Notes under the pieces: generated by a model | What the model saw: only the letters and a program-made list of their open reading frames with translations | Told to the model about the DNA's origin: nothing | The model's database searches: none | Program-made: the position numbers and the translations under genes | Assembly: GCA_002269645.1 (NCBI GenBank) | Contig: NIVC01003145.1 | Coordinates: 1 to 64,000, forward strand | Direction: 5' to 3' | Length of the DNA stretch: 64,000 bases | Origin: Macrostomum lignano | Lineage: Eukaryota | Shown: positions 7,558 through 9,819 of the stretch, piece after piece | How the letters are laid out: the number at the start of each line of letters is the position of its first letter | Position numbering within the stretch: the first letter of the stretch is position 1

Positions 7558-7968
7558 ATGGCTCGCACCAAGCAAACCGCTCGCAAATCCACCGGAGGCA
7601 AAGCGCCGCGCAAGCAGTTGGCCACCAAAGCTGCCCGAAAGTCCGCCCCCAGCACTGGCGGAGTGAAGAAGCCGCATCGCTACCGCCCCGGCACTGTCGC
7701 CCTGCGCGAGATCCGTCGCTACCAGAAGAGCACGGAGCTGCTCATCCGCAAGCTGCCATTCCAGCGGCTGGTTCGCGAGATCGCCCAGGACTTCAAGACC
7801 GACCTGCGCTTTCAATCGGCCGCCGTTGGCGCCCTGCAGGAGGCCAGCGAGGCCTACCTGGTTGGCCTGTTTGAGGACACGAACCTGTGCGCTATCCACG
7901 CCAAGCGGGTCACCATCATGCCCAAGGATATCCAGCTGGCTAGGCGCATCCGAGGCGAGCGAGCCTAA
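7558..7968 (+). CDS. H3.3: Histone H3.3-type (S31; A87-A88-V89-G90), intronless CDS
   Basis: Complete 136-codon H3 ORF. S31 and AAVG at 87-90 are replacement-variant signatures. No canonical histone stem-loop after the stop. Confidence 0.97.
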
Positions 7969-9408
7969 AAAGGCTCAGTTGCACAGCTTTTGACAAGTGC
8001 GCTCTGTGACGCTAAGTTTCTTTTATTCTCGCTTCTTAACTAATATTTTAATCTGTTTTTCCTTGTGGTCTCTATTTAAAAAAAATTCAAGCATGTTCTG
8101 CATCTCTTGTACTATATTGCCATTGTTTAATAATGTTTCAATTGACTGTTCGTGTTAGTTCAACTCTCTATCCTGTTCTCTTGTTGGTTTTGAACAAGTT
8201 TAACTATTCAGCCAAAATTAACGGTTTATTGAATTCCGGGAAATTCCTTCGTTTATTTTTATTGAGTTATTTTTTAATACAATTCTGTCGCTAATTAGTT
8301 AGGTATTATAATAAATATAGTCACAATTTATTGGCAGCTTCTGTCTTAAAAATATTCATTAAATATCAAAATATTTGCTTAGCATTATCGTCTAATATAT
8401 TATCATTGTCTACTGTGTTTAAAAAACACCTATTTTATTTTAAAATACACGTTACTAAAAATAACTAAATAGTTTAGGCTGCTCTTTTTCGTTTTTATAA
8501 TCGTTCTAAACTATTGATTTAGTTTCTAACCAAATGTTTTTCATTTCAACAAAAATAGCTTTTAGTGATTAGGAAGTTCTTTTTGTGCTTAGTATTTCGA
8601 TCTGAATTGTAAAAAATTCTCAGAAAATCTCATGTCACTACTTATTTGGGTAATTATACACATTTTTCATCTTATCGTACTTGAAAATATTGCACAATAT
8701 TGTGAAACAATGACTCACCTTGTTTTGCAATAGCTAAACCATTTAAATAGGTTTAAGTTGTTTTGATTACCGGCTCCGTGATCTAGATTGTGTCTTATCT
8801 AAAAAGGCGTAAAACTTCAATACACTACTTATTTGTGTAGTATTAAGCGCATTTTTACACTCATTTAGTATAGTCGCGATAAGATATTGTACCCACCCAT
8901 TGTGTGAATTTCGACTTGCTAGTGACGTGATCCGTGCATAGGCAAAGGCTAAACTATTTGACTTCACAACTATATGTCTGAGGTAGTTAAGTGCATCTTC
9001 ATTATAATCTATCGCTTAAATTACATTAAACCATCGCTCCATATATCTAAGAAATAAAAGTTCTCTTTGTCTAACACAAGTTTCTATTTTGTTTTAGGTT
9101 CTAAAGACACAAAAATTGGCACAACCACATTACACTACTTATTTGGGTAGTAGTAAGGGCATTTTTCGGTAAATTTTTATTAATGTGCAAAATTATTGCA
9201 CCATATTGGGCAATACCGTGAATCCGTGCACTTTGATTGAAGCTAAACCGGTTCTGATATGAAAGTCTTATATTGAAGGCTTTACACTGTATTTCAAATA
9301 GTTTGAAGAGGGAATTTTACAACATTTAGAGAGGAAAGTCAGTATCAGTTATTGTCATATAGGTCCATTTTCGGACACTATCATCCTGTCTCGTTTCGAT
9401 CTTGAGCC

Positions 9409-9819
9409 CTAAGCCCTTTCGCCTCTGATGCGCCTAGCCAACTGCATGTCTTTAGGCATGATGGTGACCCGCTTGGCGTGAATTGCGCACAGGTTCGTGT
9501 CCTCAAACAGGCCAACCAGGTAGGCCTCGCTGGCCTCCTGCAGGGCGCCGACGGCAGCCGATTGAAAGCGCAGGTCGGTCTTGAAGTCCTGGGCGATCTC
9601 GCGAACCAGCCGCTGGAATGGCAGTTTGCGGATGAGCAGCTCCGTGCTCTTCTGGTAGCGACGGATCTCACGCAGGGCGACAGTGCCGGGGCGGTAGCGG
9701 TGCGGCTTCTTCACTCCGCCAGTTACCAATGGGGTTTTCCGAGCGGCCTTGGTGGCCAGACGTTTACGAGGCGCTTTGGCGCCCATGGACTTCCTAGCTG
9801 TTTGCTTGGTGCGAGCCAT
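9409..9819 (-). CDS. Divergent histone H3 variant (H3.3-derived, altered N-terminal tail)
   Basis: Intact 136-codon ORF from ATG at 9817-9819. Eight substitutions relative to the neighbouring H3.3: T11M, G13A, Q19R, S28T, A29P, P30L, S31V, I124M. Confidence 0.93.

Follow-up and report, generated by a model that had tools for sequence, protein, structure and literature searches.

What could leave two neighboring histone H3 genes almost identical at silent sites across the middle of their coding sequences (CDS), and strongly diverged at both ends? This question is raised by a stretch of 64,000 nucleotides (nt) from the flatworm Macrostomum lignano (contig NIVC01003145.1 of assembly GCA_002269645.1, also known as Mlig_3_7), which we will call the window. 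It encodes an H3.3 protein (gene A) and a second H3 that differs from it mostly in the N-terminal tail (gene B); there are no other H3 genes in its 64 kb. A reading of the sequence alone had proposed that A and B arose by an old duplication and that a recent conversion tract homogenized their core. Three lines of evidence back this proposal: control genes that encode the same protein as A, a third H3 gene (C) whose relationships to A and B change along the gene, and an independent tract in another copy of the locus. We consider it very likely that A and B are old paralogs and that the core of B was overwritten from A by non-allelic (interlocus) gene conversion.

The genes and their segments are as follows (coordinates are positions in the window):

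7558..7968, plus strand: gene A, H3.3; intronless, with 136 codons and a stop; recognized from its open reading frame (ORF) and translation; apparent donor in both conversion events
7969..9408, no strand: AT-rich spacer of 1440 nt; its two sides are non-homologous, and it is colinear in all homeologous copies
9409..9819, minus strand: gene B, H3.3-derived tail variant; recognized from its ORF and a match to Pfam Histone (E = 2e-46); apparent conversion acceptor
7654..7892, plus strand: older putative tract in A (CDS 97-335), between the last difference in the tail (96) and the first in the C-terminal end (336)
9485..9723, minus strand: older putative tract in B (CDS 97-335), with three silent changes that are private to B (150, 195, and 264)
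9724..9799, minus strand: unconverted N-terminal tail of B (CDS 21-96), with 28 differences from A, including 7 replacements; the same in five copies of B
9409..9484, minus strand: unconverted 3' end of B (CDS 336-411, residues 112-136 plus the stop), with 13 differences from A in the window

The A/B locus and its copies

A and B are convergent (their 3' ends face each other), and their stop codons are 1440 nt apart. This bears out the inverted layout and the distance of 1.44 kb in the sequence-only reading. The similarity between A and B is limited to the CDS and the 7 nt upstream of the ATG: no resemblance extends to their untranslated regions (UTRs), to the sides of the spacer, or to the outer flanks. 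In mature numbering, which leaves out the initiator methionine and which we use for all codon numbers, the replacements in B relative to A are T11M, G13A, Q19R, S28T, A29P, P30L, S31V, and I124M.

The public collection contains the exact protein of A in 193 blocks, and the M. lignano loci have it annotated as a histone. It carries the marks of H3.3 (S31 and the AAVG patch, A87/V89/G90), and we take its sole difference from human H3.3 to be I89V. Gene B fails these marks: residue 31 is valine, and residues 28-30 are also changed. The A87/V89/G90 patch is present in B, but it may not be original, since it sits inside the converted tract. Judging from its sequence, the most fitting description of B is that of a tail variant derived from H3.3.

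To collect copies of the A/B locus, we gathered contigs that encode the neighboring Rcd1/CNOT9 protein and its cluster mates. The A+B pair is present in five loci, and the ORF of B is intact in all 5 copies. One of these loci is that of the window itself (6.5 kb of the window is 100% identical to L012, from contig NIVC01003145.1), and L013 is a near-duplicate contig from the same assembly (99.98%). The diverged copies are L001 (98.1%) and L014 (97.2%). All copies share the gene order septin, Rcd1, B, A. The spacers of the three classes of locus diverge by 2.2-3.1%. Mlig_3_7 includes three subgenomes (S, L1, and L2), with divergences of 1.9-2.4% at single-nucleotide polymorphisms (SNPs) (PMC10733133). 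Because the spacer divergence fits these figures, we read the three classes as homeologous copies. Another group of loci (L015-L017) encodes an older paralog of Rcd1, followed by a single H3.3 gene (gene C) and a gelsolin-family gene, without B.

A nearly identical core between diverged ends

The counts in the sequence-only reading proved to be exact. Codons 6-31 differ at 28/78 nt, with silent differences in 13 of the 19 codons whose amino acid is conserved; codons 32-110 (7654-7890 in A and 9487-9723 in B) differ at just 5/237 nt, all of them silent; and codons 111 to the stop differ at 13/78 nt. We will call these segments the tail, the core, and the C-terminal end. The two flanking segments together differ at 41/156 nt, compared to 5/237 in the core. 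Silent divergence between A and B (dS, by the method of Nei and Gojobori) is 0.087 for the core, whereas it is 1.21 for the C-terminal end and exceeds 1.6, at saturation, for the tail. Among conserved codons that are degenerate, 5/79 differ silently in the core and 23/47 differ silently in the flanks (Fisher p = 4.7e-8). To correct for the post hoc choice of breakpoints, we used a two-breakpoint maximum chi-square test with permutations: the observed value was reached in 0 of 2000 permutations (p = 0.0005).

The same mosaic is found in three further contigs of the assembly, which differ from the window by 0.02-3%. Including L012, it recurs in 4 further contigs, all of which belong to the one polished assembly. 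If we extend the quiet segment to the nearest differences on each side, then it contains 5 silent differences in 237-239 nt. The 3' edge of the tail of B abuts the tract and is especially diverged, with 9 differences in 12 nt (CDS 85-96, residues 28-31). Trees and estimates of dN/dS (replacement relative to silent divergence) for A and B must be made segment by segment.

Control genes show no silent-site protection of the core

The sequence-only reading had also claimed that constraint on the protein could not explain the quiet core. As controls, we used ten loci (L002-L011) from other genomes with uninterrupted genes that encode the exact protein of A. Whether we compared these ten H3.3 genes to A, to B, or to each other, the per-site silent divergence was equal in the three segments. 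For saturated pairs, it was about 0.25 per nt in every segment. Among the unsaturated pairs (11-14% divergence), the differences in the tail, core, and C-terminal end were 13/96, 29/237, and 8/75 for one pair and 13/96, 32/237, and 10/75 for another. One control pair had 0/96, 14/237, and 2/75. These controls have identical proteins and show no protection of silent sites in the core, so selection at the codon level is rejected as the cause. The sequence-only reading had named equally low silent divergence in the core of distant H3 genes as grounds for dropping its proposal; we did not find this in any of the ten.

Gene C groups differently with the core and with the ends

We used gene C, the older paralog from L015-L017, as an outgroup. 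In the core, A and B share 14 sites against C, while A and C share just 4 sites against B. In the tail, the corresponding counts are 3 and 17, and in the C-terminal end they are 4 and 10. The core differs significantly from the flanks, which together have 7 sites that group A with B and 27 that group A with C (Fisher p = 9.7e-5). These site patterns support different relationships for the different segments: the core groups A with B and the flanks group A with C.

The three-sequence branch lengths for A, B, and C are 7, 21, and 7 in the tail; 2, 11, and 5 in the C-terminal end; and 1, 4, and 14 in the core. So, the longest branch is that of B in both ends and that of C in the core. In the core, A differs from C at 15/237 nt and B differs from it at 18/237. 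In the flanks (tail and C-terminal end), the distances to C are 14/96 and 7/78 for A and 28/96 and 16/78 for B. The core distances to C are at or below the level between A and C in the flanks, and far below that between B and C. The shared core is therefore that of A, and the transfer was from A to B. By these distances, and by the comparison of locus copies described below, this direction is shown for both events.

We also considered a transfer from B to A, given that A and B share polymorphisms at CDS positions 39, 120, and 366. We rejected this idea: the sites are isolated among A-type sites, and parallel mutation is equally likely.

A second, younger tract in L014

The B gene of L014 matches the other copies of B at CDS 1-140 and 402-411. 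In between, all ten sites that set the other copies of B apart from every A gene are in the A state (150, 195, 264, 336, 339, 369, 372, 375, 379, and 394). The B gene of L014 also has 186T and 276T, which are otherwise found only in the A genes of L014 and L001. One consequence is that M124 of its product has reverted to isoleucine. In the C-terminal end, B differs from A at 13 sites in the window and at 5 in L014. The limits of this tract are 150-394 at minimum and 148-401 at maximum, compared to 97-335 for the older tract.

The A gene of L014 is unchanged, so the event was non-reciprocal and went from A to B. On the evidence of these sites, it is later than the divergence of the homeologous copies. 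At its 3' side, the young tract crossed 60 nt with ten mismatches, so moderate heterology is no absolute barrier. Like the older tract, it ends 3' of the tail, and all copies of B retain the variant tail intact.

At the 5' edge of this tract, B of L014 has two private changes that are 6 nt apart (141T and 147T, at L014:18468 and 18474). These may be associated with repair or may be ordinary mutations.

Alternative explanations

If there had been no transfer, then the silent rate in the core would have to be low in itself, due to selection at the codon or RNA level, selection related to nucleosomes, or a mutational cold spot, with the ends evolving freely. GC content at third codon positions (GC3) is in line with this: it is 0.84-0.85 in the core, 0.71/0.80 in the ends of A, and 0.58/0.68 in the unconverted parts of B. 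A mild deficit in the core between A and C (15/237, versus 14/96 in the tail; p = 0.03) is also in line with it and counts against our explanation: a difference in rate might account for a minor share of the contrast between A and B. However, the effect between A and C is two-fold at most, while the contrast between A and B is about 15-fold, and the control H3.3 genes with the identical protein lack a core deficit at any distance. A low rate also leaves unexplained why the core groups A with B and the flanks group A with C, and why the C-terminal end of B switched to A states in L014. We find this explanation hardly credible. It is also very unlikely, if less so, that B is a young duplicate of A with fast-changing ends, or that it was born as a chimera in a single event, by joining the core of A to ends from a different H3 gene, now absent from the vicinity. 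The low GC3 in the ends of B would be consistent with faster silent change, the changes in its tail (5 silent and 12 replacement) would fit either relaxed or positive selection, the older loci L015-L017 lack B, and the root cannot be placed with three sequences. But the dS of the ends is 1.2 to above 1.6, versus 0.09 in the core, and faster silent change cannot give a 15-fold contrast with sharp edges. Furthermore, the C-terminal end of B is strongly purified and yet full of silent changes, and L014 directly shows conversion from A to B at this locus. As for a chimeric birth, it would be mechanistically the same kind of event (template switching or conversion).

Other points against interlocus conversion concern the assembly. 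Mlig_3_7 was built from PacBio reads with Canu and was then polished by Pilon with Illumina and RNA-seq reads (PMC5730564), which makes false homogenization of near-identical paralogs conceivable; chimeric scaffolds account for 36% of the assembly's length (PMC10733133); and the donor of the L014 tract matches the three-way majority consensus of the A copies in that region, which resembles a locus-specific donor and a consensus of pooled reads alike. If short DNA or RNA-seq reads from a highly expressed A had been mapped onto B during polishing, or if the contigs were chimeric, then the true core of B and the 3' part of B in L014 might have been overwritten in the assembly only. However, the B-private sites at 150, 195, and 264 remain in the core in four contigs, and polishing with misplaced A reads would have removed them. 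On a B core with the divergence of the tail (about 25-36% mismatches), reads from A would have found no placement. The long tract is found in just one of five copies of B with identical targets, and that copy has 141T and 147T, which are found in no A. The contigs were built from long reads, which cover the whole 2.3-kb pair, and the mosaic recurs in three homeologous contigs, each with its own SNPs. The three homeologous contigs and the surviving B-specific sites in the core weaken the idea of an artifact, and we think that it too has very little chance of being correct. Three more observations weigh against interlocus conversion, or against what might be built upon it: the comparison uses C as the lone outgroup, within a single species of Macrostomum; a defense of the tail boundary by selection would take more than two events to demonstrate; and B is annotated in none of the five loci and is in neither public protein set.

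Timing and mechanism of the probable gene conversion

Using silent or non-coding divergence to order the events, interlocus conversion would have the following history: the origin of B (dS in the ends at least 1.2); the split of A and C (core about 0.3, with higher values in the ends); the older conversion of CDS 97-335 (dS of 0.09), which is common to all three homeologous copies; the split of those copies (0.02-0.03); and the conversion in L014. On our reading of the alignment, the B-private silent changes at 150, 195, and 264 arose after the older conversion. Because the window and L001 share these sites, the older event predates the homeologous split. There are only three sequences, so the root is not fixed. 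Also, the "old" age of B may be an overestimate, because the lower GC3 of its unconverted parts suggests faster silent change.

Each event probably began with a break in B that was repaired from the nearby inverted copy of A, on the same chromatid or the sister, without a crossover. The tracts are 240-300 nt long. Because the spacer is colinear in all of the homeologous copies, we infer that there was no crossover and no inversion. In an inverted pair, occasional crossovers give inversions rather than deletions, so the pair survives. It is plausible that closeness and inverted orientation aid conversion at this locus, as the sequence-only reading had supposed; work cited by Kursel and Malik (PMC5435080) is described there as showing that proximity favors interlocus conversion. 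The tail might have been spared by selection for the variant tail, or the block of heterology at CDS 85-96 (9 differences in 12 nt) might act as a mechanical stop.

Is B a working gene?

If B were evolving neutrally, we would expect about three replacements per silent change. For the unconverted C-terminal end, the counts along the B branch are 8 silent changes and 1 replacement (binomial p = 9e-5). This end is not shielded by conversion in the window's copy, so the protein was under purifying selection for most of the history of B. It also means that conversion is not required as the keeper of the fold, the role that the sequence-only reading had suggested for it: ordinary purifying selection held the unconverted end.

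In the tail, a conservative count of the changes on the B branch (5 silent and 12 replacement) is indistinguishable from neutrality. The seven replaced residues in the tail miss all twelve lysines and arginines among residues 1-31 (p ~ 0.02, for a pattern that we noticed post hoc). B has lost T11 and S31, and the motif around K27 has changed from ARKSAPS to ARKTPLV, with every lysine and arginine kept. We would expect H3.3-like deposition of B, with differences at those tail residues near K9-T11 and K27-S31 that can be modified.

The product of B (136 amino acids, or an ORF of 149 amino acids from an upstream GTG) has no exact match in the gene index or in a collection of 15 billion proteins. 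A search with the full-length protein returned mostly ordinary H3.3 and fused H3 models, and nothing nearer than H3.3. For the tail alone, the best hits in the protein database were generic H3 tails (88% identity at best). A degenerate DNA pattern for the tail had no match in metagenomes from JGI, and we found no paper about H3 variants of M. lignano.

One scenario is that B is a working tail variant of H3.3 that is maintained by selection, with its fold repeatedly re-supplied from H3.3, and with tracts that reach the tail being removed by selection. We view this scenario as tentative and, on balance, doubtful. If it is true, then recombination enforces compatibility with chaperones and the nucleosome while the tail evolves as a separate module, and the three subgenomes of a neopolyploid show the re-supply of the fold under way.

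In any case, B is an unannotated H3 variant of M. lignano whose changes adjoin K9 and K27, the main silencing marks. This raises the questions of whether it is expressed in the germline or elsewhere and whether its tail escapes or alters signaling at K27 or at S28/S31.

Other features of the two genes and of the locus copies

From -7 to +20 around the start codon (7551-7577 in A and 9800-9826 in B), A and B share 26 of 27 nt: ACCCAGC in A or ACCCCGC in B, and then ATGGCTCGCACCAAGCAAAC. Further upstream, the sequences are unrelated; downstream is the saturated tail; and the sequence upstream of C is different. The identity around the ATG might reflect another short tract, a border of the original duplication, or a start context that the two genes have in common.

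We identified one candidate promoter element, from inspection of the sequence:

9943..9968, minus strand: putative CCAAT pair (ATTGG at 9943-9947 and CCAAT at 9964-9968), 124-149 nt upstream of the ATG of B

A scan of 6500-11000 with Rfam found no histone 3' stem-loop near A or B. We considered whether A or B could be a processed retrogene, but 11 other H3.3 genes (C and the ten controls) are also uninterrupted and 411 nt long, and neither A nor B has a run of A after its stop codon. An ampliconic palindrome is not a good fit either: A and B are alike in the CDS and 7 nt only, while the UTRs, spacer sides, and flanks are unrelated.

Within the spacer, 8614-9166 contains three degenerate copies of a repeat (starting at 8614, 8801, and 9111), which are 61-80% identical over 56 nt. 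The unit begins around ACACTACTTATTTGGGTAGTA..GCATTTTT, and the copies are spaced by 187 and 310 nt.

The homeologous copies have some patterns of their own. In the 800 nt upstream of A (6758-7557), the window is identical to L014, although the spacer 400 nt away differs by 3.1%. As far as these sequences reveal, the homeologous copies are themselves mosaics, via exchange between subgenomes or via the scaffold chimerism that has been reported for the assembly. Pairwise comparisons of the homeologous copies of A (7558-7968 of the window, L001:20742-21152, and L014:20174-20584) give 4-8 silent differences; the window and L001 have 8, of which 7 are within the core. There are no differences between the B genes of the window and of L001, or among the three copies of C. 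The A gene of L001 has four private changes within 25 nt (276T, 277T, 294A, and 300T), which match neither B nor C, except for 300T, which is found in C. This cluster hints at another, unseen H3 donor.

Neighboring sequence in the window

Rcd1/CNOT9 is encoded at 15435-18215 on the minus strand, in three exons (18215-17826, 17224-16685, and 15614-15435), and its best match is an M. lignano protein (99% identity). The last intron of Rcd1 is filled by an 890-nt minisatellite (15772-16659, with a 19-nt unit). Just upstream of the start of Rcd1 is a 3.7-kb array with a 30-nt unit (18301-22018, about 125 copies). Exons at 29793-33146 (minus strand) match the annotated septin of L001, and an exon at 52172-53032 (minus strand) encodes a KH domain (KH_1 in Pfam, E = 2e-8); both belong to ordinary genes of the neighborhood. 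The window is unusually rich in long mini- and microsatellites (13859-14315, 28750-31300, 41299-41749, 49409-51278, 52186-56878, and 58977-63813). These include (GACA)n, 1.5 kb of (ACTG)n in the septin region, and units of 21, 24, 32, 44, and 120 nt, with many long spurious ORFs.

About 760 nt of sequence upstream of B (10190-10950) contains nested inverted repeats (10302-10394 versus 10537-10598), which are 76-89% complementary. In L013, their place is taken by a different sequence of about 270 nt, and L001 and L014 differ there by an indel of 220 nt. This is probably an insertion polymorphism of a foldback element or of something like a miniature inverted-repeat transposable element (MITE). 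The sole match to Rfam in this region was not significant (MIR1023, E = 0.73). We suspected that ORFs at 10.8-11.6 kb might encode a transposon gag protein, but they had no match in Pfam.

Comparison to known systems

Canonical histone families are said to be under birth-and-death evolution with purifying selection (as reported by Piontkivska, Rooney and Nei in 2002, cited in PMC5880237). This model fits the comparison of A to C and the ends of A and B, which have identical or near-identical proteins and saturated silent divergence. It does not predict a near-identical silent core between A and B, which are otherwise saturated.

The closest parallel is Cid1 and Cid3 in the montium subgroup of Drosophila, where conversion between paralogs of centromeric H3 (CenH3) is recurrent (Kursel and Malik 2017, PMC5435080). 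In both systems, closely linked paralogs from the H3 family have a homogenized fold and divergent N-terminal tails, the breakpoint is at the transition from tail to fold, and there were repeated events. Those authors' speculation about distinct tails on a shared fold is the same as that of the sequence-only reading. Unlike Cid1 and Cid3, A and B are of the H3.3 type, the host is a flatworm, and the genes are convergent and inverted. Also, conversion has not reached the final 25 codons of the fold in two of three homeologs; the direction can be assigned (from H3.3 to the variant); and the evidence comes from the homeologous subgenomes of one genome instead of from many species.

Conversion between variant histones is also known from mammals, where the short H2A variants H2A.B and H2A.L show concerted evolution (Molaro et al. 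2018, PMC5880237). As with A and B, recurrent interlocus conversion keeps paralogs of a histone variant similar, and functional copies are involved. However, entire genes and kilobases of flanking sequence are homogenized in H2A.B and H2A.L, without an internal breakpoint, whereas conversion between A and B affects 240-300 nt within the CDS and the flanks are unrelated. Outside of histones, IFIT1 and IFIT1B are described, in work cited in PMC5435080, as undergoing conversion that is restricted to a domain. By that description, one domain is homogenized and the other is free to diverge, as in A and B, in a different protein family.

Given these precedents, A and B are a clean new example of a process that was already described for other histone variants. 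Cid1 and Cid3 were the one well-described pair of histone paralogs with a homogenized fold and diverging tails; A and B join them as a case of the H3.3 type, in a flatworm model where transgenesis is available. Also, the three homeologous subgenomes of M. lignano can be used as an internal time series to date the conversion events.

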